Shown: positions 1 to 58,949, counted from the stretch's first letter. The stretch is DNA of 64,000 bases from Sminthopsis crassicaudata (GCF_048593235.1 NC_133619.1:234250454-234314453), one strand, 5' to 3'. Numbers and translations are program-made. Notes: a model not told the origin generated them from the sequence alone.

Positions 1-228
1 CTTCTCTTTTTTCTTCTGTATGATCCTCCATATCTGCAGGAGCTTGTTCTTGCTCTTGTCAGCTGCTGTCTCCAAGGGAAGGACTTGGTGGTCCTTGAGT
101 TCTGGGCCCGAGAAGCAAGAATCAAAGAGGGGTCTCTGGTCTTCCTCACAGAAGAATATCACTTGTTCTCCCTGTTGATCACAAGTGCTCAGGCTCACGT
201 CTTTGTGCAGCAGGTGATTTTGGCTCAT
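1..228 (-). CDS. Copy 1 (5' part only, cut by window edge): TRIM-like B-box/coiled-coil/PRY-SPRY protein
   Basis: ATG (plus-strand cat 226-228) followed by the same N-terminal sequence as the other copies; B-box reads CEEDQR. Confidence 0.8.
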   Translation of the reverse strand, partial: MSQNHLLHKDVSLSTCDQQGEQVIFFCEEDQRPLFDSCFSGPELKDHQVLPLETAADKSKNKLLQIWRIIQKKKEK

Positions 229-603
229 CTTGCCAGTGGTGCACTGGGTCTGCAGGTTCCTGCAGAGCAGCAAGGCAGCCTCCCTAAGCAATGACTCCTC
301 TGCACTCTGTGTGGGTTAAGGTTTCAGTGACTCCCTCAGTACCCTGGAGAAGACACTCTGTGCACTCTCAGTCACCCAGTCAGGAAGGTAGTTCAGGCTC
401 ATGCAAGCAAGGGAGACCTACCTGGAGGATTTATAATGAATCTCTGGTATGGATGATCCCAAGCCTCTGATTCCTTCCTTTTCAGGTCTGGAGAGAGCTA
501 GCTCCTTCCTTCAGCTCTGGCAGCAAAAGATATGGGCACTGAGCTGTGTGAGCCTTTTTAAATCTCCTCCCCTGCTTAGCCATTCTCTTAACTCCACCCT
601 CAA

Positions 604-669
604 AAAGGTGAGAACTCTTGTCTTTTGAGAGGACTTCCACTCCCTGCTTAAGTCTGAGTTCTCACCTTT
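604..669. repeat. 14-bp perfect inverted repeat (aaaggtgagaactc / gagttctcaccttt, 38-nt loop) in the upstream spacer
   Basis: Arms at 604-617 and 656-669. Repeated in each unit; some units have aataagtgagaactc, which shortens the stem to 10 bp. Confidence 0.85.
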
Positions 670-1921: not shown

Positions 1922-2026
1922 GTCCATTCAACAAGAATACAGAGAAATAGAGTATCCCTGGCAGTATACCACCCAGTCACTTTTGCTAAAGGGTCATCCT
2001 TAGTAATTAGCAACTCTGACTGGCCT

Positions 2027-3178
2027 CTACTGTGGACTCTTAGGGCAAATGATGAGTGAACCAGGGGTGCTCTGGTCTTGGGGAAGGCAAGGAGAGAAAT
2101 AAGGGCGAAGAGGCCCTTCCAAATCTATGTTTGGGTTACTGTAAACAATGGCTCTGTATGTGACATCATAAAATGCTATTTCTTCCCTTTCACAATCAAG
2201 AAAAATGCCCACTTTGTGAAGAGGCTGGCTCAACTGAATGGTCTTTTCTGAAGTGTACAAGAAGAAACCATTTCCAGATGTGAATGCTGTGATGGCCAAG
2301 ACATCTTCCCAACTGAATCTCCCTCCTGAATCATTACAGACGCCCAAAGCCCACCCCGTCTTGTCTTCCACCTCTACTTCCCAGTAGTGGGTGCCTGAGA
2401 TGAATTTCTGGGTTCCTAAAACCCCGAGAGCAGGATGAAATCTCTCTGTGTTGTGAGGCAGGTCTTGACGGGTGCTTCCATAGTGCACCCTCTTCAAATC
2501 TTCAGACAGGATGAGATGAGGATGGGCTGATTCAGGATCAAGAGTTATATCCCTGTGGAAACTCATGAGAAATTCTCTCATGCCTGTAATGGAGCAGATA
2601 GGCCAGGGAAGGAAAGGAAACTCTGGCCTTTGGAGTAGTTCTTCCTTTTTTTTCAAAGTGTCTGGTGCAGCCTGGATCATTTCCAAGGGCAGCATGTCCA
2701 AATTCTGCTCCACTTCTAACATCATTTGTTTCAGATTTTGTATTTCTGGTAACACCTTCATCTCATGCTCTGCTAGTTTGAGCAGGTTGCTTGTGGATGC
2801 CTCACCAAAACTTTTTTCGTATATAAATTTTTCTTCCATTAAGAATAGTTGCAGTTGCCTATATTGAGAACTAGTTAACACTTTGAAAGTGCAGGAACTC
2901 TCAGTAAATTGTGCCTTTCTTCTTCTCAATGTGTCCAGTGCAGTTTGACACTTCTCTTTTTTCTTCTGTATGATCCTCCATATCTGCAGGAGCTTGTTCT
3001 TGCTCTTGTCAGCTGCTGTCTCCAAGGGAATGACTTGGTGGTCCTTGAGTTCTGGGCCCGAGAAGCAAGAATCAAAGAGGGGTCTCTGGCCTTGCTCACA
3101 GAAGAATATCACTTGTTCTCCCTGTTGATCACAGGTGCTCAGGTTCAAGTCTTTGTGCAGCAGGTGATTTTGGCTCAT
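2027..3178 (-). CDS. Copy 2: RING-less TRIM-like protein, 383 aa (coiled-coil type A)
   Basis: Open frame with B-box2-like TCDQQGEQVIFFC...DHQVIPLE, PRY (DITLDPESAHPHLILSED) and SPRY (SGTHYWEVEV, VGIFLDCE). The track's start at 3241 is TTG; the first in-frame ATG (ggcaagATGa) is at 3178. Confidence 0.88.
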   Translation of the reverse strand: MSQNHLLHKDLNLSTCDQQGEQVIFFCEQGQRPLFDSCFSGPELKDHQVIPLETAADKSKNKLLQIWRIIQKKKEKCQTALDTLRRRKAQFTESSCTFKVLTSSQYRQLQLFLMEEKFIYEKSFGEASTSNLLKLAEHEMKVLPEIQNLKQMMLEVEQNLDMLPLEMIQAAPDTLKKKEELLQRPEFPFLPWPICSITGMREFLMSFHRDITLDPESAHPHLILSEDLKRVHYGSTRQDLPHNTERFHPALGVLGTQKFISGTHYWEVEVEDKTGWALGVCNDSGGRFSWEDVLAITAFTSGNGFFLYTSEKTIQLSQPLHKVGIFLDCEREEIAFYDVTYRAIVYSNPNIDLEGPLRPYFSPCLPQDQSTPGSLIICPKSPQ

Positions 3179-3505
3179 CTTGCCAGTGGTGCACTGGGTC
3201 TGCAGGTTCCTTCTGAGCAGCAAGGCAGCCTCCCTAAGCAATGACTCCTCTGCACTCTGTGTGGGTTAAGGTTTCAGTGACGCCCTCAGTGCCCGGGAGA
3301 AGACACTCTGTGCACTCTCAGTCACCCAGTCAGGAAGGTAGTTCAGGCTCATGCAAGCAAGGGAGACCTACCTGGAGGTTTTTTAATGAAACTCTGGTAT
3401 GGATGATCCCAAGCGTCTGATTCCTTCCTTTTCAGGTCTGGAGAGAGCTAGCTCCTTCCCTTCAGCTCTGGCAGCAAAAGATATGGGCACTGAGCTGTGT
3501 GAGCC

Positions 3506-4976: not shown

Positions 4977-6128
4977 CTACTGTGCACTCTTAGGGCAAAT
5001 GATGAGTGAACCAGGGGTGCTCTGGTCTTGGGGAAGGCAAGGAGAGAAATAAGGGCGAAGAGGGCCTTCCAAATCTATGTTTGGGTTACTGTAAACAATG
5101 GCTCTGTATGTGACATCATAAAATGCTATTTCTTGCCTTTCACAATCAAGAAAAATGCCCACTTTGTGCAGAGGTTGGCTCAACTGAATGGTCTTTTCTG
5201 AAGTGTACAAGAAGAAACCATTTCCAGATGTGAATGCTGTGATGGCCAAGACATCTTCCCAACTGAATCTCCCTCCTGAATCATTACAGACGCCCAAAGC
5301 CCACCCCGTCTTGTCTTCCACCTCTACTTCCCAGTAGTGGGTGCCTGAGATGAATTTCTGGGTTCCTAAAACCCCGAGAGCAGGATGAAATCTCTCTGTG
5401 TTGTCAGGCAGGTCTTGACGGGTGCTTCCATAGTGCACCCTCTTCAAATCTTCAGACAGGATGAGATGAGGATGGGCTGATTCAGGATCAAGAGTTATAT
5501 CCCTGTGGAAACTCATGAGAAATTCTCTCATGCCTGTAATGGAGCAGATAGGCCAGGGAAGGAAAGGAAACTCTGGCCTTTGGAGTAGTTCTTCCTTTTT
5601 TTTCAAAGTGTCTGGTGCAGCCTGGATCATTTCCAAGGGCAGCATGTCCAAATTCTGCTCCACTTCTAACATCATTTGTTTCAGATTTTGTATTTCTGGT
5701 AACACCTTCATCTCATGCTCTGCTAGTTTGAGCAGGTTGCTTGTGGATGCCTCACCAAAACTTTTTTCGTATATAAATTTTTCTTCCATTAAGAATAGTT
5801 GCAGTTGCCTATATTGAGAACTAGTTAACACTTTCAAAGTGCAGGAACTCTCAGTAAATTGTGCCTTTCTTCTTCTCAATGTGTCCAGTGCAGTTTGACA
5901 CTTCTCTTTTTTCTTCTGTATGATCCTCCATATCTGCAGGAGCTTGTTCTTGCTCTTGTCAGCTGCTGTCTCCAAGGGAATGACTTGGTGGTCCTTGAGT
6001 TCTGGGCCCGAGAAGCAAGAATCAAAGAGGGGTCTCTGGCCTTCCTCACAGAAGAATATCACTTGTTCTCCCTGTTGATCACAGGTGCTCAGGTTCAAGT
6101 CTTTGTGCAGCAGGTGATTTTGGCTCAT
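4977..6128 (-). CDS. Copy 3: RING-less TRIM-like protein, 383 aa (CC type A, SPRY type X)
   Basis: Intact ORF, same domain motifs as copy 2. Confidence 0.88.
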   Translation of the reverse strand: MSQNHLLHKDLNLSTCDQQGEQVIFFCEEGQRPLFDSCFSGPELKDHQVIPLETAADKSKNKLLQIWRIIQKKKEKCQTALDTLRRRKAQFTESSCTLKVLTSSQYRQLQLFLMEEKFIYEKSFGEASTSNLLKLAEHEMKVLPEIQNLKQMMLEVEQNLDMLPLEMIQAAPDTLKKKEELLQRPEFPFLPWPICSITGMREFLMSFHRDITLDPESAHPHLILSEDLKRVHYGSTRQDLPDNTERFHPALGVLGTQKFISGTHYWEVEVEDKTGWALGVCNDSGGRFSWEDVLAITAFTSGNGFFLYTSEKTIQLSQPLHKVGIFLDCERQEIAFYDVTYRAIVYSNPNIDLEGPLRPYFSPCLPQDQSTPGSLIICPKSAQ

Positions 6129-7930
6129 CTTGCCAGTGGTGCACTGGGTCTGCAGGTTCCTTCTGAGCAGCAAGGCAGCCTCCCTAAGCAATGACTCCTC
6201 TGCACTCTGTGTGGGTTAAGGTTTCAGTGACTCCCTCAGTGCCCGGGAGAAGACACTCTGTGCACTCTCAGTCACCCAGTCAGGAAGGTAGTTCAGGCTC
6301 ATGCAAGCAAGGGAGACCTACCTGGAGGTTTTTTAATGAAACTCTGGTATGGATGATCCCAAGCCTCTGATTCCTTCCTTTTCAGGTCTGGAGAGAGCTA
6401 GCTCCTTCCCTTCAGCTCTGGCAGCAAAAGATATGGGCACTGAGCTGTGTGAGCCTTTTTAAATCTCCTCCCCTGCTTAGCCATTCTCTTAACTCCACCC
6501 TCAAAAAGGTGAGAACTCTTGTCTTTTGAGAGGACTTCCACTCCCTGCTTCAGGGCTGAGTTCTCACCTTTCTTCTAATCCCACCCTTCAGAGTCAGCCT
6601 CTCTAGAGAAGGAAACTCCTAACCTCCTTCTGAGTACATGGAAAGATCTCCTGATTGGGTCACTTAGCAGTGACATTCTCACCTGCAAGCCTCAAGATAT
6701 CACCTTTTTGATGTGCTGACATGGAAACATGGCAAAGAAAGACGCCCAGCCCCCACCCCAAACAAAATCTTTTTTTTTTTCCCCAAACTGCTTCCCACCC
6801 ATGGCTCCTATGAAGAAAACATGTACCAACCTTTGCTATCCCTCCCCCTTAGTTTCCACTTTGGCTCTCATTACATACTTATGATTCTATCACTGGATCA
6901 AGATGTCTTAGCATTTTTAGTATATGTTTTTTAGAAGAACATTATTTCTGATTGCTATCTTTTTAAATGTTCATCTCAGAAAGAAGATTGTCTTCTTCCT
7001 TTTGGTTATGCCACAAAGGATTTGAGAACTGAGGCAGCTGTTACTTTTTTTTTTTAATTGTTTCACCTTTTAAGTGCCTTTTATTGACTCCTCAAAAGGT
7101 GAGAACTCCCACTTTCTAAAGTTCTTCCACTCTCTCCACTGGAGTTTGTCCTCTTAAAATATAATACATCAATATATATTTATTTTATTTCAATTAAAAT
7201 AGACTTTAATCTGGACACCTGGGGACTGCATCTATCCTCTTCTAGGTTGTATTCCAGGCTGGGATACCTCTGACAAGGGGCACCAAATGTCCTACAAGAG
7301 AAGGGTAGAAAAACAGAATGACACAATGGAAGTACCTTTGGCATAATATCTTGCTTCAAGTTCCTTACCAGTTGAGGACTAATTTATTTCAGTCCTTCAA
7401 AACATCTTTATAGCTGTACCTATTACATTTTCTTATTTCATGCCAGATCTTTGAGTCTGCTATGATCCTCAAGTAGTATTCTGACTCAAAACAATAGACT
7501 TTCCATACCCATCTCCCTAGGCCTTCAAAGAAGAGAACTTTTCTCCCTTTTCTTTCTTTATTTGTTTGCTTCCTTACTCCTTTGGTTGTTCAATGATTCC
7601 TACAGTCTTTTAGCCTTCCAAGTGTTGTTCTCCCTCCCTTTCTACTAGGAATTTTCCCCTTCACTTTTGCTCTCCTCAGGCCTTGTCTCCTATTCTGCTA
7701 CCCACCTCCCCATCCCAATTAGCTTCTGGAAAAGCAGCCACCAAAGGGGAAAAATGATCTTTTTACGTTAAGAATTCTTAACAAAGAACACAGTATTTTT
7801 TTGGTTTAAATAATCACACTTTATTGTCCATTCAACAGAAATACAGAGTAATAGAGTATCCCTGGCAGTGTTCCACCCAGTCACTTTTGCTAAAGGGTCA
7901 TCCTTAGTAATTAGGAACTCTGACTGGCCT

Positions 7931-9082
7931 CTACTGTGCACTCTTAGGGCAAATGATGAGTGAACCAGGGGTGCTCTGGTCTTGGAGAAGGCAAGGAGAG
8001 AAATAAGGGCGAAGAGGCCCTTCCAAATCTATGTTTGGGTTACTGTAAACAATGGCTCTGTATGTGACATCATAAAATGCTATTTCTTGCCTTTCACAAT
8101 CAAGAAAAATGCCCAATTTGTGCAGAGGCTGGCTCAACTGAATGGTCTTTTCTGAAGTGTACAAGAAGAAACCATTTCCAGATGTAAATGCTGTGATGGC
8201 CAAGACATCTTCCCAACTGAATCTCCCTCCTGAATCATTACAGACGCCCAAAGCCCACCCCGTCTGGTCTTCCACCTCTACTTCCCAGTAGTGGGTGCCT
8301 GAGATGAATTTCTGGGTTCCTAAAACCCCGAGAACAGGATGAAATCTCTCTGTGTTGTGAGGCAGGTCTTGACGGGTGCTTCCATAGTGCACCCTCTTCA
8401 AATCTTCAGACAGGATGAGATGAGGATGGGCTGATTCAGGATCAAGAGTTATATCCCTGTGGAAACTCATGAGAAATTCTCTCATGCCTGTAATGGAGCA
8501 GATAGGCCAGGGAAGGAAAGGAAACTCTGGCCTTTGGAGTAGTTCTTCCTTTTTTTTCAAAGTGTCTGGTGCAGCCTGGATCATTTCCAAGGGCAGCATG
8601 TCCAAATTCTGCTCCACTTCTAACATCATTTGTTTCAGATTTTGTGTTTCTGGTAACACCTTCATCTCATGCTCTGCTAGTTTGAGCAGGTTGCTTGTGG
8701 ATGCCTCACCAAAACTTTTTTCGTATATAAATTTTTCTTCCATTAAGAATAGTTGCAGTTGCCTATATTGAGAACTAGTTAACACTTTCAAAGTGCAGGA
8801 ACTCTCAGTAAATTGTGCCTTTCTTCTTCTCAATGTGTCCAGTGCAGTTTGACACTTCTCTTTTTTCTTCTGTATGATCCTCCATATCTGCAGGAGCTTG
8901 TTCTTGCTCTTGTCAGCTGCTGTCTCCAAGGGAATGACTTGGTGGTCCTTGAGTTCTGGGCCCGAGAAGCAAGAATCAAAGAGGGGTCTCTGGCCTTCCT
9001 CACAGAAGAATATCACTTGTTCTCCCTGTTGATCACAGGTGCTCAGGCTCACGTCTTTGTGCAGCAGGTGATTTTGGCTCAT
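7931..9082 (-). CDS. Copy 4: RING-less TRIM-like protein, 383 aa (CC type A, SPRY type Y)
   Basis: Intact ORF, same motifs; LPHN/HPVLG/EDQ/HKLG variants. Confidence 0.88.
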   Translation of the reverse strand: MSQNHLLHKDVSLSTCDQQGEQVIFFCEEGQRPLFDSCFSGPELKDHQVIPLETAADKSKNKLLQIWRIIQKKKEKCQTALDTLRRRKAQFTESSCTLKVLTSSQYRQLQLFLMEEKFIYEKSFGEASTSNLLKLAEHEMKVLPETQNLKQMMLEVEQNLDMLPLEMIQAAPDTLKKKEELLQRPEFPFLPWPICSITGMREFLMSFHRDITLDPESAHPHLILSEDLKRVHYGSTRQDLPHNTERFHPVLGVLGTQKFISGTHYWEVEVEDQTGWALGVCNDSGGRFSWEDVLAITAFTSGNGFFLYTSEKTIQLSQPLHKLGIFLDCERQEIAFYDVTYRAIVYSNPNIDLEGPLRPYFSPCLLQDQSTPGSLIICPKSAQ

Positions 9083-10884
9083 CTTGCCAGTGGTGCACTG
9101 GGTCTGCAGGTTCCTTCTGAGCAGCAAGGCAGCCTCCCTAAGCAATGACTCCTCTGCACTCTGTGTGGGTTAAGGTTTCAGTGACTCCCTCAGTGCCCGG
9201 GAGAAGACACTCTGTGCACTCTCAGTCACCCAGTCAGGAAGGTAGTTCAGGCTCATGCAAGCAAGGGAGACCTCCCTGGAGGTTTTTTAATGAAACTCTG
9301 GTATGGATGATCCCAAGCGTCTGATTCCTTCCTTTTCAGGTCTGGAGAGAGCTAGCTCCTTCCCTTCAGCTCTGGCAGCAAAAGATATGGGCACTGAGCT
9401 GTGTGAGCCTTTTTAAATCTCCTCCCCTGCTTAGCCATTCTCTTAACTCCACCCTCAAAAAGGTGAGAACTCTTGTCTTTTGAGAGGACTTCCACTCCCT
9501 GCTTCAGGGCTGAGTTCTCACCTTTCTTCTAATCCCACCCTTCAGAGTCAGCCTCTCTAGAGAAGGAAACTCCTAACCTCCTTCTGAGTACATGGAAAGA
9601 TCTCCTGATTGGGTCACTTAGCAGTGACATTCTCACCTGCAAGCCTCAAGATATCACCTTTTTGATGTGCTGACATGGAAACATGGCAAAGAAAGACGCC
9701 CAGCCCCCACCCCAAACAAAATCTTTTTTTTTTTCCCCAAACTGCTTCCCACCCATGGCTCCTATGAAGAAAACATGTACCAACCTTTGCTATCCCTCCC
9801 CCTTAGTTTCCACTTTGGCTCTCATTACATACTTATGATTCTATCACTGGATCAAGATGTCTTAGCATTTTTAGTATATGCTTTTTAGAAGAACATTATT
9901 TCTGATTGCTATCTTTTTAAATGTTCATCTCAGAAAGAAGATTGTCTTCTTCCTTTTGGTTATGCCACAAAGGATTTGAGAACTGAGGCAGCTGTTACTT
10001 TTTTTTTTTAATTGTTTCACCTTTTAAGTGCCTTTTATTGACTCCTCAAAAGGTGAGAACTCCCACTTTCTAAAGTTCTTCCACTCTCTCCACTGGAGTT
10101 TGTCCTCTTAAAATATAATACATCAATATATATTTATTTTATTTCAATTAAAATAGACTTTAATCTGGACACCTGGGGACTGCATCTATCCTATTCTAGG
10201 TTGTATTCCAGGCTGGGATACCTCTGACAAGGGGCACCAAATGTCCTACAAGAGAAGGGTAGAAAAACAGAATGACACAATGGAAGTACTTTTGGCATAA
10301 TATCTTGCTTCAAGTTCCTTACCAGTTGAGGACTAATTTATTTCAGTCCTTCAAAACATCTTTATAGCTGTACCTATTACATTTTCTTATTTCATGCCAG
10401 ATCTTTGAGTCTGCTATGATCCTCAAGTAGTATTCTGACTCAAAACAATAGACTTTCCATACCCATCTCCCTAGGCCTTCAAAGAAGAGAACTTTTCTCC
10501 CTTTTCTTTCTTTATTTGTTTGCTTCCTTACTCCTTTGGTTGTTCAATGATTCCTACAGTCTTTTAGCCTTCCAAGTGTTGTTCTCCCTCCCTTTCTACT
10601 AGGAATTTTCCCCTTCACTTTTGCTCTCCTCAGGCCTTGTCTCCTATTCTGCTACCCACCTCCCCATCCCAATTAGCTTCTGGAAAAGCAGCCACCAAAG
10701 GGGAAAAATGATCTTTTTACGTTAAGAATTCTTAACAAAGAACACAGTATTTTTTTGGTTTAAATAATCACACTTTATTGTCCATTCAACAGAAATACAG
10801 AGTAATAGAGTATCCCTGGCAGTGTTCCACCCAGTCACTTTTGCTAAAGGGTCATCCTTAGTAATTAGGAACTCTGACTGGCCT

Positions 10885-26791: not shown

Positions 26792-27581
26792 CTTGCCAGT
26801 GGTGCACTGGGTCTGCAGGTTCCTTCTGAGCAGCAAGGCAGCCTCCCTAAGCAATGACTCCTCTGCACTCTGTGTGGGTTAAGGTTTCAGTGACTCCCTC
26901 AGTGCCCTGGAGAAGACACTCTGTGCACTCTCAGTCACCCAGTCAGGAAGGTAGTTCAGGCTCATGCAAGCAAGGGAGACCTACCTGGAGGTTTTTTAAA
27001 TGAAACTCTGGTATGGATGATCCCAAGCGTCTGATTCCTTCCTTTTCAGGTCTGGAGAGAGCTAGCTCCTTCCCTTCAGCTCTGGCAGCAAAAGATATGG
27101 GCACTGAGCTGTGTGAGCCTTTTTAAATCTCCTCCCCTGCTTAGCCATTCTCTTAACTCCACCCTCAAAAAGGTGAGAACTCTTGTCTTTTGAGAGGACT
27201 TCCACTCCCTGCTTCAGGGCTGAGTTCTCACCTTTCTTCTAATCCCACCCTTCAGAGTCAGCCTCTCTAGAGAAGGAAACTCCTAACCTCCTTCTGAGTA
27301 CATGGAAAGATCTCCTGATTGGGTCACTTAGCAGTGACATTCTCACCTGCAAGCCTCAAGATATCACCTTTTTGATGTGCTGACATGGAAACATGGCAAA
27401 GAAAGACGCCCAGCCCCCACCCCAAACAAAATCTTTTTTTTTTCCCCAAACTGCTTCCCACCCATGGCTCCTATGAAGAAAACATGTACCAACCTTTGCT
27501 ATCCCTCCCCCTTAGTTTCCACTTTGGCTCTCATTACATACTTATGATTCTATCACTGGATCAAGATGTCTTAGCATTTTT

Positions 27582-34338: not shown

Positions 34339-34353
34339 AGTATATGCTTTTTA
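34339..34353 (+). repeat. L1 target-site duplication, right copy
   Basis: agtatatgcttttta directly after the L1 5' end; normal spacer sequence resumes. Confidence 0.95.
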
Positions 34354-47148: not shown

Positions 47149-48300
47149 CTACTGTGGACTCTTAGGGCAAATGATGAGTGAACCAGGGGTGCTCTGGTCT
47201 TGGAGAAGGCAAGGAGAGAAATAAGGGTGAAGAGGCCCTTCCAAATCTATGTTTGGGTTGCTGTAAACAATGGATCTGTATGTGACATCATAAAATGCTA
47301 TTTCTTGCCTTTCACAATCAAGAAAAATGCCCACTTTGTGCAGAGGCTGGCTCAACTGAATGGTCTTTTCTGAAGTGTACAAGAAGAAACCATTTCCAGA
47401 TGTGAATGCTGTGATGGCCAAGACATCTTCCCAACTGAATCTCCCTCCTGAATCATTACAGATGCCCAAAGCCCACCCCGTCTTGTCTTCCACCTCTACT
47501 TCCCAGTAGTGGGTGCCTGAGATGAATTTCTGGGTTCCTAAAACCCCGAAAGCAGGATGAAATCTCTCTGTGTTGTCAGGCAGGTCTTGACGGGTCCTTC
47601 CATAGTGCACCCTCTTCAAATCTTCAGACAGGATGAGATGAGGATGGGCTGATTCAGGATCAAGAGTTATATCCCTGTGGAAACTCATGAGAAATTCTCT
47701 CATGCCTGTAATGGAGCAGATAGGCCAGGGAAGGAAAGGAAACTCTGGCCTTTGGAGTAGTTCTTCCTTTTTTTTCAAAGTGTCTGGTGCAGCCTGGATC
47801 ATTTCCAAGGGCAGCATGTCCAAATTCTGCTCCACTTGTAACATCATTTGTTTCAGCTTTTGTGTTTCTGGTAACACCTTCATCTCATGCTCTGCTAGTT
47901 TGAGCAGGTTGCTTGTGGATGCCTCAACAAAACTTTTTTCGTATATAAATTTTTCTTCCATTAAAAATAGTTGCAGTTGCCTATATTGAGAACTAGTTAA
48001 CACTTTCAAAGTGCAGGAACTCTCAGTAAATTGCGCCTTTCTTCTTCTCAATGTGTCCAGTGCAGTTTGACACTTCTCTTTTTTCTTCTGTATGATCCTC
48101 CATATCTGCAGGAGCTTGTTCTTGCTCTTGTCAGCTGCTGTCTCCAAGGGAAGGACTTGGTGGTCCTTGAGTTCTGGGCCCGAGAAGGAAGAATCAAAGA
48201 GGGGTCTCTGGCCTTCCTCACAGAAGAATATCACATGTTCTCCCTGTTGATCACAGGTGCTCTGGCTCACGTCTTTGTGCAGCAGGTGATTTTGGCTCAT
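47149..48300 (-). CDS. Copy 15: RING-less TRIM-like protein, 383 aa
   Basis: Intact ORF from the ATG at 48300; the track's 48345 start is TTG. Confidence 0.88.
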   Translation of the reverse strand: MSQNHLLHKDVSQSTCDQQGEHVIFFCEEGQRPLFDSSFSGPELKDHQVLPLETAADKSKNKLLQIWRIIQKKKEKCQTALDTLRRRKAQFTESSCTLKVLTSSQYRQLQLFLMEEKFIYEKSFVEASTSNLLKLAEHEMKVLPETQKLKQMMLQVEQNLDMLPLEMIQAAPDTLKKKEELLQRPEFPFLPWPICSITGMREFLMSFHRDITLDPESAHPHLILSEDLKRVHYGRTRQDLPDNTERFHPAFGVLGTQKFISGTHYWEVEVEDKTGWALGICNDSGGRFSWEDVLAITAFTSGNGFFLYTSEKTIQLSQPLHKVGIFLDCERQEIAFYDVTYRSIVYSNPNIDLEGPLHPYFSPCLLQDQSTPGSLIICPKSPQ

Positions 48301-50105
48301 CTTGCCAGTGGTGCACTGGGTCTGCAGGTTCCTTCTGAGCAGCAAGGCAGCCTCCCTAAGGAATGACTCCTCTGCACTCTGTGTGGGTTAAGGTTTCAGT
48401 GACTCCCTCAGTGCCCTGGAGAAGACACTCTGTGCACTCTCAGTCACCCAGTCAGGAAGGAAGTTCAGGCTCATGCAAGCAAGGGAGACCTACCTGGAAG
48501 TTTCTTAATGAAACTCTGGTATGGATGATCCCAAGCCTCTGATTCCTTCCTTTTCAGGTCTGGAGAGAGCTAGCTCCTTCCCTTCAGCTCTGGCAGCAAA
48601 AGATATGGGCACTGAGCTGTGTGAGCCTTTTTAAATCTCCTCCCCTGCTTAGCCATTCTCTTAACTCCACCCTCAAAAAGGTGAGAACTCTTGTCTTTTG
48701 AGAGGACTTCCACTCCCTGCTTCAGGGCTGAGTTCTCACCTTTCTTCTAATCCCACCCTTCAGAGTCAGCCTCTCTAGAGAAGGAAACTCCTTCCCTCCT
48801 TCTGAGTACATGGAAAGATCTCCTCATTGTGTCACTTAGTAGTGACATTCTCACCTGCAAGCCTCAAGATATCACCTTTTTGATGTGCTGATATGGAAAC
48901 ATGGCAAAGAAAGACCCCCAGCCCCCACTCCAAACAAAATCTTTTTTTTTTTTTTCCCCAAACTGCTTCCTACCCATGGCTCCTATGAAGAATACCTGTA
49001 CCAACCTTTGCTATCCCTCCCCCTTAGTTTCCACTTTGGCTCTCATTACATACTTATGATTCTATCACTGGATCAAGATGTCTTAACTCTTTTAGTATAT
49101 GTTTTTTAGAAGGACATTATTTCTGATTCCTGTCTTTTTAAATGTTCATCTCAGAAAGAAGATTGTCTTCTTCCTTTTGGTTATGCCACAAAGGATTTGA
49201 GAACTGAGGCAGCTGTTACTTTTTTTTTTTAATTGTTTCACCTTTTAAGTTCCTTTTATTGACTCCTCAAAAGGTGAGAACTCCCACTTTCTAAAGTTCT
49301 TCCACTCTCTCCACTGGAGTTTGTCCTCTTAAAATATAATACATCAATATATATTTATTTTATTTCAATGAAAATAGACTTTAATCTGGACACCTGGAGA
49401 CTGCATCTATCCTATTCTAGGTTGTATTCCAGGCTGGGATACCTCTGACAAGGGGCACCAAATGTCCTACAAGAGAAGGGTAGAAAAACAGAATGACACA
49501 ATGGAAGTACCTTTGGCATAATATCTTGCTTCAAGTTCCTTACCAGTTGAGGACTAATTTATTTCAGTCCTTCAAAACATCTTTATAGCTGTACCTATTA
49601 CATTTTCTTATTTCATGCCAGATCTTTGAGTCTGCTATGATCCTCAAGTAGTATTCTGACTCAAAACAATAGACTTTCCATACCCATCTCCCTAGGCCTT
49701 CAAAGAAGAGAACTTTTCTCCCTTTTCTTTCTTTATTTGTTTTCTTCCTTACTCCTTTGGTTGTTCAATGATTCCTACAGTCTTTTAGCCTTCCAAGTGT
49801 TGTTCTCCCTCCCTTTCTACTAGGAATTTTCCCCTTCACTTTTGCTCTCTTCAGTCCTTGTCTCCTATTCTGTTACCCACCTCCCCATCCCAATTAGCTT
49901 CTGGAAAAGCAGCCACCAGTGGGGAAAAATGATCTTTTTACGTTAAGAATTCTTAACAAAGAACACAGTATTTTCTTGGTTTAATTAATCACACTTTATT
50001 GTCCATTCAACAAGAATACAGAGAAATAGAGTATCCCTGGCAGTATACCACCCAGTCACTTTTGCTAATTGGTCATCCTTAGTAATTAGGAACTCTGACT
50101 GGCCT

Positions 50106-51257
50106 CTACTGTGGACTCTTAGGGCAAATGATGAGTGAACCAGGGGTGCTCTGGTCTTGGAGAAGGCAAGGAGAGAAATAAGGGCGAAGAGGCCCTTCCA
50201 AATCTATGTTTGGGTTGCTGTAAACAATGGATCTGTATGTGACATCATAAAATGCTATTTCTTGCCTTTCACAATCAAGAAAAATGCCCACTTTGTGCAG
50301 AGGCTGGCTCAACTGAATGGTCTTTTCTGAAGTGTACAAGAAGAAACCATTTCCAGATGTGAATGCTGTGATGGCCAAGACATCTTCCCAACTGAATCTC
50401 CCTCCTGAATCATTACAGACGCCCAAAGCCCACCCCGTCTTGTCTTCCACCTCTACTTCCCAGTAGTGGGTGCCTGAGATGAATTTCTGGGTTCCTAAAA
50501 CCCCGAGAGCAGGATGAAATCTCTCTGTGTTGTCAGGCAGGTCTTGACGGGTGCTTCCATAGTGCACCCTCTTCAAATCTTCAGACAGGATGAGATGAGG
50601 ATGGGCTGATTCAGGATCAAGGGTTATATCCCTGTGGAAACTCATGAGAAATTCTCTCATGCCTGTAATGGAGCAGATAGGCCAGGGAAGGAAAGGAATC
50701 TCTGGCCTTTGGAGTAGTTCTTCCTTTTTTTTCAAAGTGTCTGGTGCAGCCTGGATCATTTCCAAGGGCAGCATGTCCAAATTCTGCTCCACTTCTAACA
50801 TCATTTGTTTCAGCTTTTGTATTTCTGGTAACACCTTCATCTCATGCTCTGCTAGTTTGAGCAGGTTGCTTGTGGATGCCTCAACAAAACTTTTTTCGTA
50901 TATAAATTTTTCTTCCATTAAAAATAGTTGCAGTTGCCTATATTGAGAACTAGTTAACACTTTCAAAGTGCAGGAACTCTCAGTAAATTGCGCCTTTCTT
51001 CTTCTCAATGTGTCCAGTGCAGTTTGACACTTCTCTTTTTTCTTCTGTATGATCCTCCATATCTGCAGGAGCTTGTTCTTGCTCTTGTCAGCTGCTGTCT
51101 CCAAGGGAAGGACTTGGTGGTCCTTGAGTTCTGGGCCCGAGAAGGAAGAATCAAAGAGGGGTCTCTGGCCTTCCTCACAGAAGAATATCACATGTTCTCC
51201 CTGTTGATCACAGGTGCTCAGGCTCACGTCTTTGTGCAGCAGGTGATTTTGGCTCAT
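50106..51257 (-). CDS. Copy 16: RING-less TRIM-like protein, 383 aa
   Basis: Intact ORF; track translation identical to copy 18. Confidence 0.88.
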   Translation of the reverse strand: MSQNHLLHKDVSLSTCDQQGEHVIFFCEEGQRPLFDSSFSGPELKDHQVLPLETAADKSKNKLLQIWRIIQKKKEKCQTALDTLRRRKAQFTESSCTLKVLTSSQYRQLQLFLMEEKFIYEKSFVEASTSNLLKLAEHEMKVLPEIQKLKQMMLEVEQNLDMLPLEMIQAAPDTLKKKEELLQRPEIPFLPWPICSITGMREFLMSFHRDITLDPESAHPHLILSEDLKRVHYGSTRQDLPDNTERFHPALGVLGTQKFISGTHYWEVEVEDKTGWALGVCNDSGGRFSWEDVLAITAFTSGNGFFLYTSEKTIQLSQPLHKVGIFLDCERQEIAFYDVTYRSIVYSNPNIDLEGPLRPYFSPCLLQDQSTPGSLIICPKSPQ

Positions 51258-53062
51258 CTTGCCAGTGGTGCACTGGGTCTGCAGGTTCCTTCTGAGCAGC
51301 AAGGCAGCCTCCCTAAGGAATGACTCCTCTGCACTCTGTGTGGGTTAAGGTTTCAGTGACTCCCTCAGTGCCCTGGAGAAGACACTCTGTGCACTCTCAG
51401 TCACCCAGTCAGGAAGGAAGTTCAGGCTCATGCAAGCAAGGGAGACCTACCTGGAAGTTTCTTAATGAAACTCTGGTATGGATGATCCCAAGCCTCTGAT
51501 TCCTTCCTTTTCAGGTCTGGAGAGAGCTAGCTCCTTCCCTTCAGCTCTGGCAGCAAAAGATATGGGCACTGAGCTGTGTGAGCCTTTTTAAATCTCCTCC
51601 CCTGCTTAGCCATTCTCTTAACTCCACCCTCAAAAAGGTGAGAACTCTTGTCTTTTGAGAGGACTTCCACTCCCTGCTTCAGGGCTGAGTTCTCACCTTT
51701 CTTCTAATCCCACCCTTCAGAGTCAGCCTCTCTAGAGAAGGAAACTCCTTCCCTCCTTCTGAGTACATGGAAAGATCTCCTCATTGTGTCACTTAGTAGT
51801 GACATTCTCACCTGCAAGCCTCAAGATATCACCTTTTTGATGTGCTGATATGGAAACATGGCAAAGAAAGACCCCCAGCCCCCACTCCAAACAAAATCTT
51901 TTTTTTTTTTTTCCCCAAACTGCTTCCTACCCATGGCTCCTATGAAGAATACCTGTACCAACCTTTGCTATCCCTCCCCCTTAGTTTCCACTTTGGCTCT
52001 CATTACATACTTATGATTCTATCACTGGATCAAGATGTCTTAACTCTTTTAGTATATGTTTTTTAGAAGGACATTATTTCTGATTCCTGTCTTTTTAAAT
52101 GTTCATCTCAGAAAGAAGATTGTCTTCTTCCTTTTGGTTATGCCACAAAGGATTTGAGAACTGAGGCAGCTGTTACTTTTTTTTTTTAATTGTTTCACCT
52201 TTTAAGTTCCTTTTATTGACTCCTCAAAAGGTGAGAACTCCCACTTTCTAAAGTTCTTCCACTCTCTCCACTGGAGTTTGTCCTCTTAAAATATAATACA
52301 TCAATATATATTTATTTTATTTCAATGAAAATAGACTTTAATCTGGACACCTGGAGACTGCATCTATCCTATTCTAGGTTGTATTCCAGGCTGGGATACC
52401 TCTGACAAGGGGCACCAAATGTCCTACAAGAGAAGGGTAGAAAAACAGAATGACACAATGGAAGTACCTTTGGCATAATATCTTGCTTCAAGTTCCTTAC
52501 CAGTTGAGGACTAATTTATTTCAGTCCTTCAAAACATCTTTATAGCTGTACCTATTACATTTTCTTATTTCATGCCAGATCTTTGAGTCTGCTATGATCC
52601 TCAAGTAGTATTCTGACTCAAAACAATAGACTTTCCATACCCATCTCCCTAGGCCTTCAAAGAAGAGAACTTTTCTCCCTTTTCTTTCTTTATTTGTTTT
52701 CTTCCTTACTCCTTTGGTTGTTCAATGATTCCTACAGTCTTTTAGCCTTCCAAGTGTTGTTCTCCCTCCCTTTCTACTAGGAATTTTCCCCTTCACTTTT
52801 GCTCTCTTCAGTCCTTGTCTCCTATTCTGTTACCCACCTCCCCATCCCAATTAGCTTCTGGAAAAGCAGCCACCAGTGGGGAAAAATGATCTTTTTACGT
52901 TAAGAATTCTTAAGAAAGAACACAGTATTTTCTTGGTTTAATTAATCACACTTTATTGTCCATTCAACAAGAATACAGAGAAATAGAGTATCCCTGGCAG
53001 TATACCACCCAGTCACTTTTGCTAATTGGTCATCCTTAGTAATTAGGAACTCTGACTGGCCT

Positions 53063-54214
53063 CTACTGTGGACTCTTAGGGCAAATGATGAGTGAACCAG
53101 GGGTGCTCTGGTCTTGGAGAAGGCAAGGAGAGAAATAAGGGCGAAGAGGCCCTTCCAAATCTATGTTTGGGTTGCTGTAAACAATGGATCTGTATGTGAC
53201 ATCATAAAATGCTATTTCTTGCCTTTCACAATCAAGAAAAATGCCCACTTTGTGCAGAGGCTGGCTCAACTGAATGGTCTTTTCTGAAGTGTACAAGAAG
53301 AAACCATTTCCAGATGTGAATGCTGTGATGGCCAAGACATCTTCCCAACTGAATCTCCCTCCTGAATCATTACAGACGCCCAAAGCCCACCCCGTCTTGT
53401 CTTCCAACTCTACTTCCCAGTAGTGTGTGCCTGAGATGAATTTCTGGGTTCCTAAAACCCCGAGAGCAGGATGAAATCTCTCTGTGTTGTCAGGCAGGTC
53501 TTGACGGGTGCTTCCATAGTGCACCCTCTTCAAATCTTCAGACAGGATGAGATGAGGATGGGCTGATTCAGGATCAAGGGTTATATCCCTGTGGAAACTC
53601 ATGAGAAATTCTCTCATGCCTGTAATGGAGCAGATAGGCCAGGGAAGGAAAGGAATCTCTGGCCTTTGGAGTAGTTCTTCCTTTTTTTTCAAAGTGTCTG
53701 GTGCAGCCTGGATCATTTCCAAGGGCAGCATGTCCAAATTCTGCTCCACTTCTAACATCATTTGTTTCAGCTTTTGTGTTTCTGGTAACACCTTCATCTC
53801 ATGCTCTGCTAGTTTGAGCAGGTTGCTTGTGGATGCCTCAACAAAACTTTTTTCGTATATAAATTTTTCTTCCATTAAAAATAGTTGCAGTTGCCTATAT
53901 TGAGAACTAGTTAACACTTTCAAAGTGCAGGAACTCTCAGTAAATTGCGCCTTTCTTCTTCTCAATGTGTCCAGTGCAGTTTGACACTTCTCTTTTTTCT
54001 TCTGTATGATCCTCCATATCTGCAGGAGCTTGTTCTTGCTCTTGTCAGCTGCTGTCTCCAAGGGAAGGACTTGGTGGTCCTTGAGTTCTGGGCCCGAGAA
54101 GGAAGAATCAAAGAGGGGTCTCTGGCCTTCCTCACAGAAGAATATCACATGTTCTCCCTGTTGATCACAGGTGCTCAGGCTCACGTCTTTGTGCAGCAGG
54201 TGATTTTGGCTCAT
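53063..54214 (-). CDS. Copy 17: RING-less TRIM-like protein, 383 aa
   Basis: Intact ORF. Confidence 0.88.
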   Translation of the reverse strand: MSQNHLLHKDVSLSTCDQQGEHVIFFCEEGQRPLFDSSFSGPELKDHQVLPLETAADKSKNKLLQIWRIIQKKKEKCQTALDTLRRRKAQFTESSCTLKVLTSSQYRQLQLFLMEEKFIYEKSFVEASTSNLLKLAEHEMKVLPETQKLKQMMLEVEQNLDMLPLEMIQAAPDTLKKKEELLQRPEIPFLPWPICSITGMREFLMSFHRDITLDPESAHPHLILSEDLKRVHYGSTRQDLPDNTERFHPALGVLGTQKFISGTHYWEVELEDKTGWALGVCNDSGGRFSWEDVLAITAFTSGNGFFLYTSEKTIQLSQPLHKVGIFLDCERQEIAFYDVTYRSIVYSNPNIDLEGPLRPYFSPCLLQDQSTPGSLIICPKSPQ

Positions 54215-56019
54215 CTTGCCAGTGGTGCACTGGGTCTGCAGGTTCCTTCTGAGCAGCAAGGCAGCCTCCCTAAGGAATGACTCCTCTGCACTCTGTGTGG
54301 GTTAAGGTTTCAGTGACTCCCTCAGTGCCCTGGAGAAGACACTCTGTGCACTCTCAGTCACCCAGTCAGGAAGGAAGTTCAGGCTCATGCAAGCAAGGGA
54401 GACCTACCTGGAAGTTTCTTAATGAAACTCTGGTATGGATGATCCCAAGCCTCTGATTCCTTCCTTTTCAGGTCTGGAGAGAGCTAGCTCCTTCCCTTCA
54501 GCTCTGGCAGCAAAAGATATGGGCACTGAGCTGTGTGAGCCTTTTTAAATCTCCTCCCCTGCTTAGCCATTCTCTTAACTCCACCCTCAAAAAGGTGAGA
54601 ACTCTTGTCTTTTGAGAGGACTTCCACTCCCTGCTTCAGGGCTGAGTTCTCACCTTTCTTCTAATCCCACCCTTCAGAGTCAGCCTCTCTAGAGAAGGAA
54701 ACTCCTTCCCTCCTTCTGAGTACATGGAAAGATCTCCTCATTGTGTCACTTAGTAGTGACATTCTCACCTGCAAGCCTCAAGATATCACCTTTTTGATGT
54801 GCTGATATGGAAACATGGCAAAGAAAGACCCCCAGCCCCCACTCCAAACAAAATCTTTTTTTTTTTTTTCCCCAAACTGCTTCCTACCCATGGCTCCTAT
54901 GAAGAATACCTGTACCAACCTTTGCTATCCCTCCCCCTTAGTTTCCACTTTGGCTCTCATTACATACTTATGATTCTATCACTGGATCAAGATGTCTTAA
55001 CTCTTTTAGTATATGTTTTTTAGAAGGACATTATTTCTGATTCCTGTCTTTTTAAATGTTCATCTCAGAAAGAAGATTGTCTTCTTCCTTTTGGTTATGC
55101 CACAAAGGATTTGAGAACTGAGGCAGCTGTTACTTTTTTTTTTTAATTGTTTCACCTTTTAAGTTCCTTTTATTGACTCCTCAAAAGGTGAGAACTCCCA
55201 CTTTCTAAAGTTCTTCCACTCTCTCCACTGGAGTTTGTCCTCTTAAAATATAATACATCAATATATATTTATTTTATTTCAATGAAAATAGACTTTAATC
55301 TGGACACCTGGAGACTGCATCTATCCTATTCTAGGTTGTATTCCAGGCTGGGATACCTCTGACAAGGGGCACCAAATGTCCTACAAGAGAAGGGTAGAAA
55401 AACAGAATGACACAATGGAAGTACCTTTGGCATAATATCTTGCTTCAAGTTCCTTACCAGTTGAGGACTAATTTATTTCAGTCCTTCAAAACATCTTTAT
55501 AGCTGTACCTATTACATTTTCTTATTTCATGCCAGATCTTTGAGTCTGCTATGATCCTCAAGTAGTATTCTGACTCAAAACAATAGACTTTCCATACCCA
55601 TCTCCCTAGGCCTTCAAAGAAGAGAACTTTTCTCCCTTTTCTTTCTTTATTTGTTTTCTTCCTTACTCCTTTGGTTGTTCAATGATTCCTACAGTCTTTT
55701 AGCCTTCCAAGTGTTGTTCTCCCTCCCTTTCTACTAGGAATTTTCCCCTTCACTTTTGCTCTCTTCAGTCCTTGTCTCCTATTCTGTTACCCACCTCCCC
55801 ATCCCAATTAGCTTCTGGAAAAGCAGCCACCAGTGGGGAAAAATGATCTTTTTACGTTAAGAATTCTTAAGAAAGAACACAGTATTTTCTTGGTTTAATT
55901 AATCACACTTTATTGTCCATTCAACAAGAATACAGAGAAATAGAGTATCCCTGGCAGTATACCACCCAGTCACTTTTGCTAATTGGTCATCCTTAGTAAT
56001 TAGGAACTCTGACTGGCCT

Positions 56020-57171
56020 CTACTGTGGACTCTTAGGGCAAATGATGAGTGAACCAGGGGTGCTCTGGTCTTGGAGAAGGCAAGGAGAGAAATAAGGGCG
56101 AAGAGGCCCTTCCAAATCTATGTTTGGGTTGCTGTAAACAATGGATCTGTATGTGACATCATAAAATGCTATTTCTTGCCTTTCACAATCAAGAAAAATG
56201 CCCACTTTGTGCAGAGGCTGGCTCAACTGAATGGTCTTTTCTGAAGTGTACAAGAAGAAACCATTTCCAGATGTGAATGCTGTGATGGCCAAGACATCTT
56301 CCCAACTGAATCTCCCTCCTGAATCATTACAGACGCCCAAAGCCCACCCCGTCTTGTCTTCCACCTCTACTTCCCAGTAGTGGGTGCCTGAGATGAATTT
56401 CTGGGTTCCTAAAACCCCGAGAGCAGGATGAAATCTCTCTGTGTTGTCAGGCAGGTCTTGACGGGTGCTTCCATAGTGCACCCTCTTCAAATCTTCAGAC
56501 AGGATGAGATGAGGATGGGCTGATTCAGGATCAAGGGTTATATCCCTGTGGAAACTCATGAGAAATTCTCTCATGCCTGTAATGGAGCAGATAGGCCAGG
56601 GAAGGAAAGGAATCTCTGGCCTTTGGAGTAGTTCTTCCTTTTTTTTCAAAGTGTCTGGTGCAGCCTGGATCATTTCCAAGGGCAGCATGTCCAAATTCTG
56701 CTCCACTTCTAACATCATTTGTTTCAGCTTTTGTATTTCTGGTAACACCTTCATCTCATGCTCTGCTAGTTTGAGCAGGTTGCTTGTGGATGCCTCAACA
56801 AAACTTTTTTCGTATATAAATTTTTCTTCCATTAAAAATAGTTGCAGTTGCCTATATTGAGAACTAGTTAACACTTTCAAAGTGCAGGAACTCTCAGTAA
56901 ATTGCGCCTTTCTTCTTCTCAATGTGTCCAGTGCAGTTTGACACTTCTCTTTTTTCTTCTGTATGATCCTCCATATCTGCAGGAGCTTGTTCTTGCTCTT
57001 GTCAGCTGCTGTCTCCAAGGGAAGGACTTGGTGGTCCTTGAGTTCTGGGCCCGAGAAGGAAGAATCAAAGAGGGGTCTCTGGCCTTCCTCACAGAAGAAT
57101 ATCACATGTTCTCCCTGTTGATCACAGGTGCTCAGGCTCACGTCTTTGTGCAGCAGGTGATTTTGGCTCAT
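56020..57171 (-). CDS. Copy 18: RING-less TRIM-like protein, 383 aa (last copy of the array)
   Basis: Intact ORF. Confidence 0.88.
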   Translation of the reverse strand: MSQNHLLHKDVSLSTCDQQGEHVIFFCEEGQRPLFDSSFSGPELKDHQVLPLETAADKSKNKLLQIWRIIQKKKEKCQTALDTLRRRKAQFTESSCTLKVLTSSQYRQLQLFLMEEKFIYEKSFVEASTSNLLKLAEHEMKVLPEIQKLKQMMLEVEQNLDMLPLEMIQAAPDTLKKKEELLQRPEIPFLPWPICSITGMREFLMSFHRDITLDPESAHPHLILSEDLKRVHYGSTRQDLPDNTERFHPALGVLGTQKFISGTHYWEVEVEDKTGWALGVCNDSGGRFSWEDVLAITAFTSGNGFFLYTSEKTIQLSQPLHKVGIFLDCERQEIAFYDVTYRSIVYSNPNIDLEGPLRPYFSPCLLQDQSTPGSLIICPKSPQ

Positions 57172-58949
57172 CTTGCCAGTGGTGCACTGGGTCTGCAGGT
57201 TCCTTCTGAGCAGCAAGGCAGCCTCCCTAAGGAATGACTCCTCTGCACTCTGTGTGGGTTAAGGTTTCAGTGACTCCCTCAGTGCCCTGGAGAAGACACT
57301 CTGTGCACTCTCAGTCACCCAGTCAGGAAGGAAGTTCAGGCTCATGCAAGCAAGGGAGACCTACCTGGAAGTTTCTTAATGAAACTCTGGTATGGATGAT
57401 CCCAAGCCTCTGATTCCTTCCTTTTCAGGTCTGGAGAGAGCTAGCTCCTTCCCTTCAGCTCTGGCAGCAAAAGATATGGGCACTGAGCTGTGTGAGCCTT
57501 TTTAAATCTCCTCCCCTGCTTAGCCATTCTCTTAACTCCACCCTCAAAAAGGTGAGAACTCTTGTCTTTTGAGAGGACTTCCACTCCCTGCTTCAGGGCT
57601 GAGTTCTCACCTTTCTTCTAATCCCACCCTTCAGAGTCAGCCTCTCTAGAGAAGGAAACTCCTTCCCTCCTTCTGAGTACATGGAAAGATCTCCTCATTG
57701 TGTCACTTAGTAGTGACATTCTCACCTGCAAGCCTCAAGATATCACCTTTTTGATGTGCTGATATGGAAACATGGCAAAGAAAGACCCCCAGCCCCCACT
57801 CCAAACAAAATCTTTTTTTTTTTTTTTCCCCAAACTGCTTCCTACCCATGGCTCCTATGAAGAATACCTGTACCAACCTTTGCTATCCCTCCCCTTAGTT
57901 TCCACTTTGGCTCTCATTACATACTTATGATTCTATCACTGGATCAAGATGTCTTAACTTTTTTAGTATATGTTTTTTAGAAGGACATTATTTCTGATTC
58001 CTGTCTTTTTAAATGTTCATCTCAGAAAGAAGATTGTCTTCTTCCTTTTGGTTATGCCACAAAGGATTTGTGAACTGAGGCAGCTGTTACTTTTTTTTTT
58101 TTTAATTGTTTCACCTTTTAAGTTCCTTTTATTGACTCCTCAAAAGGTGAGAACTCCCACTTCCTAAAGTGCTTCCACTCTCTCCTCTGGGGTTTGTCCT
58201 CTTAAAATATAATACATAAATATATATTTATTTTATTTCAATGAAAATAGACTTTAATCTGTACACCTGGTGACTGCATATATCCTCTTCTAGGTTGTAT
58301 TCCAGGCTGGGATACCTCTGACAAGGGGCACCAAATGTCCTACAAGAGAAGGGTAGAAAAACAGAATGACACAATGGAAGTATCCTTGGCAAAATATCTT
58401 GCTTCAAGTTCCTATTTGGTTGTGGACTAATTTATTGCAGTCCTTCAAAACATCTTTATAGCTGTACCTATTACATTTTCTTATTTCATGCCAGATCTTT
58501 GAGTCTGCTATGATCCTCAAATAGTATTCTGATTGAAAACAATAGACATTCCATACCCATATCCCAAGGCCTTCAAGGAAGAGAACTTTTCTCCCTTTTC
58601 TTTCTTTATTTGTTTGCTTCCTTACTCCTTTGGTTGTTCCTTGATTCCTACGGTCTTTTAGCCTTCCAAATGTTGTTCTCCCTCCCTTTCTACTAGGAAT
58701 TTTTCCCTTCACTTTTGCTCTCCTCAGGCATTTTCTCCTATTCTGCTACCCACCTCCCCTTCCCAATTAGCTTTTGGAAAAGCAGCCACCCATGGGGAAA
58801 AATGATCTTTTTACGTTAAGAAATCTTAACAAAGCACACAGTATTTTCTTGGTTTAAATAATCACCCTTTATTGACCATTGAACAGGAATACAGAGAAAT
58901 AAAGCATCCCTGGCAGTGTTCCACCCAGTCACTTTTCCTAAAGTGTCAT

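Follow-up and report, generated by a model that had tools for sequence, protein, structure and literature searches.

Gene-bearing macrosatellites such as D4Z4/DUX4 and RS447/USP17 are built of approximately 3-kb head-to-tail units of high identity that each carry one intronless open reading frame (ORF), and they are marked by copy-number polymorphism, by their chromatin state and by embryonic expression. TRIM genes have undergone lineage-specific tandem expansions, among them cattle and rodent TRIM5, the primate TRIM43/48/49/64 genes on chromosome 11 and the fish finTRIM genes. Here we analyse a 64,000-nt stretch of DNA of the fat-tailed dunnart Sminthopsis crassicaudata (hereafter, the window), located at approximately 234,250,454–234,314,453 of CM109183.1 (656.9 Mb; assembly GCA_048593235.1), in which positions 1–58949 are a head-to-tail tandem array of units that each carry, on the minus strand, a RING-less TRIM ORF with a PRY-SPRY (B30.2) domain. 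We conclude, with a probability of roughly 0.6, that the array is a young tandem amplification, in the Sminthopsis lineage, of one marsupial single-exon TRIML1-like gene, whose product is probably a non-catalytic binder supplied at a dosage set by copy number, probably in reproductive tissue.

The array shares its unit layout with D4Z4/DUX4 and RS447/USP17 but carries a gene of a different family, and it is known here from sequence. It resembles the tandem TRIM expansions in its birth-and-death amplification of a B30.2 TRIM gene and in its fast protein evolution, and it is a new case among them, although the members of those expansions are mostly RING-bearing, more diverged from one another and, in mammals, multi-exon. 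The described genes closest to it are those of the TRIML group. Expression of eutherian TRIML1 is reported to be restricted to reproductive tissue (PMC6993854, PMC12007913), and the protein keeps the RING and has no recognizable B-box (PMC6993854). TRIML2 has neither RING nor B-box, has no E3 activity of its own and shows an omega above that of TRIML1, and the same work treats RING-less TRIML as a eutherian innovation (PMC6993854); the domain differences are repeated in PMC12007913. In the opossum, transcripts of TRIML1 type are reported from testis and ovary only, and many marsupial ‘TRIML1’ genes were set aside as likely assembly or annotation artefacts (PMC6993854). By sequence and by tree, eutherian TRIML1 is the nearest eutherian relative of the array gene, with a coiled coil and PRY-SPRY in common, but it is RING-bearing, unamplified and a single multi-exon gene (6.6 kb in sheep). 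TRIML2 is the nearest functional analogue of the array gene; unlike the array, it is a single gene described as eutherian-specific, and the RING loss of the array is a separate one. The first-pass annotation of the window did not recognize a described locus, which holds for the literature, where our search found no paper on the dunnart array, but not for gene annotation, as NCBI calls genes on eight of the copies.

The array consists of at least 18 units and continues past the left edge of the window. With one ORF as the query, BLASTN located 17 full ORF copies, 96.5–100% identical, and a partial copy of 402 nt at the left edge; every copy is on the minus strand, and the period is 2944–2957 bp (Table 1). 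Repeated 20-base words are most often spaced 2957, 2950 or 2954 bases apart, and lesser maxima at 5905 and 8858 bases correspond to two and three units. Tandem Repeats Finder missed the array because its longest period was 500, and word spacing and BLAST were used instead; Rfam gave no matches in window positions 35000–64000. Whole units are 95.3–99.9% identical, and unit homology ends at position 58949, the right limit of the array. With kilobase-sized head-to-tail units, high identity and one ORF per unit, the array is organized as a macrosatellite.

Translation showed that 16 of the 17 full copies are open, three for 441 amino acids (aa) and 13 for 383 aa, with a frameshift in the remaining one; the 13 copies have a TAA at codon 29, after which a 383-aa frame is open from M59. 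A poly(A)-signal motif lies approximately 100 nt downstream of each ORF stop (18 matches), and a TATA-like motif, which may serve as a promoter, lies approximately 160 nt upstream of the upstream ATG in all 18 units (for example, at 57497..57508 on the minus strand). The first-pass annotation had reported a unit of approximately 2.95 kb repeated at least 18 times, 16 of 17 complete copies with an open 383- or 441-aa frame and an AATAAA in each unit, and all of these reappear here.

The copies fall into four subfamilies (A, B, C and D) and differ at 0–50 positions per ORF. A higher-order block of three units (8.86 kb) spans positions 4977–22694, where c02–c04 recur as c05–c07: the unit pairs u02/u05, u03/u06 and u04/u07 are 99.8, 99.6 and 99.8% identical, whereas adjacent units differ by 2–3%. 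These structured subfamilies and the three-unit pattern argue against an assembly artefact, in which a much smaller repeat was over-expanded or a much larger one collapsed, and so do a unique L1 insertion with a target-site duplication in one unit, a private 8-bp deletion in another unit and a private frameshift in a further one. The edge unit u17, which carries c17, is the most divergent whole unit (95.3–97.5% identity to the others), as a real array predicts, and DNA runs from two different samples contain 40–46% of the words sampled from the last unit and its flank. The window sequence is free of N. The array does run past the window edge, so that the window does not give its true size, but we regard an artefactual copy number as highly improbable.

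The best protein matches of the array product are marsupial proteins named ‘TRIML1’, and outside the marsupials the top-scoring TRIM match is ruminant TRIML1, followed by turtle TRIM39-like. RING-less relatives of 376–400 aa occur in Sminthopsis, Antechinus, Sarcophilus, Dromiciops, Trichosurus and Gracilinanus, and RING-bearing marsupial ‘TRIML1’ proteins of approximately 468 aa are 45–52% identical to the array protein. In a tree based on the sequence that begins at the B-box, with TRIM39-like, TRIM27 and TRIM21 as the root and with TRIML1 as the eutherian TRIML gene, the marsupial genes form a clade with Ovis and Bos TRIML1 with a Shimodaira–Hasegawa-like approximate likelihood-ratio test (SH-aLRT) value of 100. 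The RING-less genes of dasyurids all group in a single clade (SH-aLRT 100) that is embedded among marsupial paralogues with a RING, and the array is sister to the Sminthopsis protein P0002, on a long branch (0.25). The array gene is therefore not a one-to-one orthologue of eutherian TRIML1 but a single-exon RING-less paralogue deep in the marsupial expansion. TRIML had been one of several parent clades proposed for the array, and both the protein search and the tree favour it; the proposal of a lineage-specific, recently amplified RING-less TRIM/B30.2 family is likewise borne out, and the roles of sensor, decoy or dominant negative raised with it are hypothetical.

Named by NCBI as probable or putative E3 ubiquitin-protein ligase TRIML1, the RING-less marsupial proteins of Sminthopsis, Antechinus and Sarcophilus (P0002 and P0004–P0006) are 56–74% identical to the array product and have the same architecture. 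They have in common with it a single coding exon, a start Met ahead of the B-box, a RING relic that is out of frame and an arrangement in tandem clusters on the same chromosome. The array differs from them in the absence of three B-box ligands, in its new locus 67 Mb from the older cluster, in copies that are far more numerous and uniform (95–99.9%) and in a long branch with a ratio of non-synonymous to synonymous substitution rates (dN/dS) of approximately 1.

The fate of the RING can be read from the DNA upstream of the ORF. When the N terminus of a RING-bearing possum paralogue was used as a TBLASTN query, the second half of a RING appeared immediately before the B-box but out of register with the ORF; a deletion has removed its central C-x-H ligands, and a second frameshift separates it from the B-box. 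The relic is present in every window unit examined, and the same out-of-frame relic is found in a cluster at 167 Mb of the same chromosome and in Sarcophilus (Tasmanian devil), indicating that the RING loss is old and common to dasyurids. Because the DNA still contains the relic and the clade branches from within RING-bearing marsupial genes, the loss is independent of that in eutherian TRIML2. The description of the array gene as a RING-less TRIM thus stands, but the loss is not tied to the array: it belongs to a clade shared by dasyurids and has left a frameshifted relic in the same exon. The 441-aa form was considered as a real protein and rejected, because its codons 1–58 read through the RING relic out of frame and the counterpart of M59 is the start Met of the relatives.

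The 167-Mb cluster also bears on the origin of the array. This older cluster of the same unit type (L002; CM109183.1:167,165,487-167,186,785) contains the gene for P0002 (432 aa, at 167.17 Mb), two 389-aa genes and broken copies. The two 389-aa genes lie 3.27 kb apart with a synonymous divergence (dS) of 0.004 between them, and such near-identical tandem genes indicate that tandem amplification is recurrent in the family. The array unit aligns to the cluster units almost end to end, spacers included, at 77–84% identity. Because both flanks are homologous to the 167-Mb units, the founder was a DNA-level copy of a whole unit and not a retrocopy, and a fresh retrocopy origin of the unit is ruled out. 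Marsupial RING-less and RING-bearing paralogues have a single coding exon of 1152–1419 nt, the Sarcophilus member (at 161.8 Mb on a 645-Mb chromosome) is single-exon as well, and sheep TRIML1 is multi-exon and spans 6.6 kb; an exact look-up of a further protein, P0012, gave no record. Since the RING-bearing paralogues are also single-exon, the intron loss is old and family-wide; the array is therefore not a new retrogene, and any retroposition would be earlier than the radiation of the family.

Pfam detected PRY (PF13765; E = 1.8e-20, 72.8 bits) and SPRY (PF00622; E = 2.1e-13, 50.9 bits) in the array protein, both above the cut-offs, and no RING families; the B-box family PF00643 gave no match at E up to 0.01, although it does match the relatives. 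The nearest solved structure is the PRY-SPRY of TRIM11 (E = 1.3e-39). An AlphaFold2 model based on the family alignment (mean predicted local distance difference test score (pLDDT) 64.8) consists of a small beta region, a helix and the SPRY beta sandwich. The small beta region is at the B-box (pLDDT ~75) and is followed by a single long helix at residues 52–160 (pLDDT 74–88), a predicted coiled coil. Of the features of a class IV TRIM, the array protein thus has the PRY-SPRY and a predicted coiled-coil helix, and it has neither a RING nor a zinc-binding B-box2. All columns of the PRY-SPRY that are invariant in the family are retained, and a 5-residue deletion in a SPRY loop is common to the array and P0002. 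The protein deviates from the family at eight positions with a conservation of 90% or more, a number within the family's range, and three of these are B-box ligands. Codons 146–170 of the coiled coil form a two-state cassette (for example, at window positions 11677–11775) with approximately 15 changed codons, mostly amino-acid-changing, in which subfamilies B and C are nearer to the family consensus than A and D; its origin by gene conversion from an unseen paralogue is possible.

Signs of selection on the frame come from two periods. All rate estimates use Nei–Gojobori counting, with a three-taxon split for the branches; the first period is the divergence of the array from P0002. Between the two sequences the ORF has two gap events in 1149 nt, both in frame, and the flank has 16 in 1551 nt. 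In neutral simulations over d = 0.10, 1.4% of runs left a 383-codon frame without stops, and with frameshifts included the chance of an open frame fell to 1e-4 to 1e-6. The second period is that within the array, where the ORF has 71 substitutions and no indels in 1152 columns (one indel if c09 is counted), compared with 148 substitutions and 14 indels across 1635 spacer columns. Substitutions per column are thus 0.062 in the ORF versus 0.091 in the spacers (Fisher P = 0.005); approximately 9.9 indels would be expected in the ORF at the spacer rate (Fisher P = 0.04 for the ratio of indels to substitutions), and none of the 71 ORF substitutions is a nonsense change (P ~0.05). The frame has therefore been protected by selection while its sequence evolved at nearly neutral speed, and the within-array data are suggestive of protection that continued in the array phase. 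The caution that recent amplification alone can preserve open frames, raised in the first-pass annotation, is apt for the within-array period, where the evidence of constraint is weak.

Several observations weigh against a functional gene and favour our main rival explanation, a neutral segmental amplification of a gene that was already dead or died on its move to 234 Mb, with frames kept open by youth and gene conversion. On the stem branch to the array (dS ~0.10), dN/dS is 0.9–1.07, compared with approximately 0.5 on the P0002 branch, and between array subfamilies the ratio of the proportions of non-synonymous and synonymous differences (pN/pS) is 0.6–0.9. The ORF does not diverge from P0002 more slowly than the 5′ flank (Jukes–Cantor distances of 0.140 and 0.150, respectively). 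The nearly invariant zinc ligands of the B-box, which P0002 retains, are replaced (H19Q, C35F and H44L), and some otherwise conserved SPRY positions are altered, for example, by G271E. In most copies the upstream ATG and its in-frame TAA act as an upstream ORF, one copy (c09) is frameshifted, and a full-length L1 is tolerated within the array. The depletion of indels in the ORF may be explained in part by the homopolymer-rich spacers.

The records of transcription are on the same side. NCBI genes are missing on c01–c03, c08–c09 and c14–c17, and exact look-up of the 383-aa products of c01 and c02 gave no gene on record. Four sequencing runs whose RNA label is a guess contain approximately 70% of the words sampled from the ORF, but their contigs, mapped on two units, extend over spacers and ORFs alike, with no splice joints, and their contig totals of 0.65–1.6 Gb are DNA-like. 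As whole units are covered without joints, these runs are unable to separate RNA from DNA. Twelve smaller RNA-type runs contain next to none of the array sequence, and an exact look-up of P0125 returned the genome record only, with zero Logan transcript contigs.

What speaks against the neutral explanation is that the frame survived a stem dS of approximately 0.10, for which the neutral chance is at most 1e-4, that the indels separating the array ORF from P0002 are all in frame while the flanks have 16 gap events, that every family-invariant PRY-SPRY residue was kept, and that within the array the ORF has gained no nonsense change and fewer substitutions and indels than the spacers. Because of this evidence of past constraint, any loss of function under the neutral explanation would have been very recent. 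We consider it possible but doubtful. A rate of evolution close to that of the flank, combined with the removal of frame-breaking changes, would fit a fast-evolving, conflict-type gene better than a dead one.

A further explanation is that the array products are antiviral or anti-retroelement binders of restriction type, similar to TRIM5 but without the ligase, in which case diversifying selection would act on the PRY-SPRY surface in place of germline or embryonic conflict. The PRY-SPRY is closest to those of TRIM11, TRIM21, pyrin and butyrophilin B30.2, ligand binders in immunity, and the high dN/dS with a preserved frame and the SPRY-loop deletion common to the array and P0002 would be in keeping with such a role. 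However, the amino-acid differences among copies cluster in the coiled-coil cassette and not in the SPRY loops, pN/pS of the PRY-SPRY among subfamilies is 0.3–1.0 on very few changes, and the nearest characterized relatives, TRIML1 and TRIML2, are genes of reproductive tissue, which makes this explanation improbable.

The ORF is intronless, as the first-pass annotation stated, but not all gene models are. NCBI annotates 383-aa single-exon genes on c04–c07 and c11 and 406-aa products on c10, c12 and c13, and the models of the latter three, and of these only, use one GC-AG intron. The acceptor lies approximately 640 nt beyond the ORF stop; in the c13 model it is at 43560/43559, after a pyrimidine tract, and the 55-nt last exon ends with TAG at 43505. 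Sixteen units have the donor motif and 17 the acceptor motif. Because the splice in the 406-aa models cuts short an otherwise intact SPRY, these models may be an indirect hint of spliced RNA evidence.

The amplification of a TRIML1-like gene that we favour took the following course. A single-exon ancestor that encoded RING, B-box2, coiled coil and PRY-SPRY lost the RING through an internal deletion and frameshifts in the dasyurid ancestor or earlier, and the ORF now starts at the Met just ahead of the B-box. From the 167-Mb cluster, a unit of approximately 3 kb, comprising the gene and both flanks, was duplicated at the DNA level into the 234-Mb position of this chromosome and expanded to at least 18 units, partly as three-unit (8.86-kb) blocks. 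Three B-box zinc ligands were lost en route to the array, with the family-invariant PRY-SPRY residues retained. We suggest that the array grew by unequal crossing-over and was partly homogenized by gene conversion. The 383-aa product would be incapable of E3 ligase activity and would form a coiled-coil dimer that binds its target through the PRY-SPRY, either as a binder without catalytic activity or to modulate paralogues that have a RING, with copy number supplying the dosage. By analogy with the TRIML1-type genes of the opossum and of eutherians, expression would be expected to be restricted to the gonad or the early embryo.

A more specific proposal, which we advance as speculative and hold to be rather unlikely in its full form, is that the array is an expressed, dosage-amplified, ligase-dead TRIML family of the dasyurid germline or cleavage embryo, convergent with TRIML2 in its RING loss, with a coiled coil and PRY-SPRY under genetic conflict and with a product that modulates the RING-bearing TRIML1 paralogues. 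The conflict may be, for example, with retroelements, or of a sperm–egg or drive-like kind; modulation may occur through binding of the same target or through heterodimerization; and the array may be a marsupial counterpart of eutherian multi-copy genes of the early embryo and gonad.

A locus in a chromosome-level assembly contradicts the artefact reading of marsupial TRIML1 genes: the expansion is real and its genes are single-exon. It also documents an independent RING loss in the dasyurid clade and, in the dunnart, an array of macrosatellite type with 18 or more units. Were the array expressed, it would offer a tractable model, in a laboratory marsupial, for the function and amplification of ligase-dead TRIM proteins; if silent, it would be a dated case of a gene cluster that seeded a new tandem array, which then started to decay.

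Table 1. Coordinates of the array copies and associated features in the window.
Feature	Position	Strand	Remarks
c00	1..402	-	partial copy; initial 402 nt of the ORF region, truncated at the window edge
c01	2027..3352	-	subfamily A; TAA at codon 29; 383-aa frame from M59
c02	4977..6302	-	subfamily A; 383 aa open; opens the three-unit block c02–c04
c03	7931..9256	-	subfamily A; 383 aa open
c04	10885..12210	-	subfamily B; 383 aa open; NCBI model P0126
c05	13836..15161	-	subfamily A; 383 aa open; NCBI model P0125
c06	16790..18115	-	subfamily A; 383 aa open; NCBI model P0124
c07	19743..21068	-	subfamily B; 383 aa open; NCBI model P0123
c08	22695..24012	-	subfamily A; 8-bp deletion upstream of M59; 383 aa open
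c09	25639..26965	-	subfamily A; +1 frameshift near codon 180; sole broken copy
Full-length L1	27597..34338	-	in the spacer upstream of c09, between c09 and c10
c10	35349..36674	-	subfamily C; 441 aa open; NCBI spliced 406-aa model P0122
c11	38298..39623	-	subfamily B; 383 aa open; NCBI model P0121
c12	41249..42574	-	subfamily C; 441 aa open; NCBI 406-aa model P0127
c13 spliced model, 3′ part	43505..44358 (region to ~44363)	-	GC donor in SPRY codon 389; intron from 44358
c13	44199..45524	-	subfamily C; 441 aa open; NCBI 406-aa model P0001
c14	47149..48474	-	subfamily D; 383 aa open
c15	50106..51431	-	subfamily D; 383 aa open; ORF identical to c17
c16	53063..54388	-	subfamily D; 383 aa open
c17	56020..57345	-	subfamily D; 383 aa open; edge unit
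RING relic, example in c17	57235..57420	-	C-T-E-C ... C-R-G-V-I; frame differs from the ORF
Array boundary	58951..59172	.	225-bp element with 82% similarity to a spacer segment found within each unit

Library contigs leave the array sequence at two points. Contigs of the runs X1 and X2 that are approximately 2% off the reference depart from the unit at window position 37413 (spacer position ~885) into unrelated sequence, which could be the other boundary of the array or an insertion in a copy outside the window. In contigs of X2–X4, a loose end at window position 35547 translates like a P0005-type paralogue (…TSDKKFQLAW…), and the same libraries therefore include other family members; graph contigs of these libraries merge paralogues at shared words.

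The L1 in the spacer between c09 and c10 has two open ORFs, ORF2 at 27959–31792 (1277 aa, with endonuclease and reverse-transcriptase domains) and ORF1 at 32315–33475 (386 aa). It is flanked by a 15-bp target-site duplication (27582–27596 and 34339–34353) and its poly(A) tail leads into a (TA)n run; as it is inserted in one spacer, it is younger than its unit. Beyond the array boundary lie old L1 fragments at 59218–61240, 61471–62251 and 62787–63886, approximately 76–82% identical to the young L1. A 252-aa ORF at 61493–62251, for which Pfam returned no matches, overlaps a stretch that matches the ORF1 region of the young L1 on the opposite strand.

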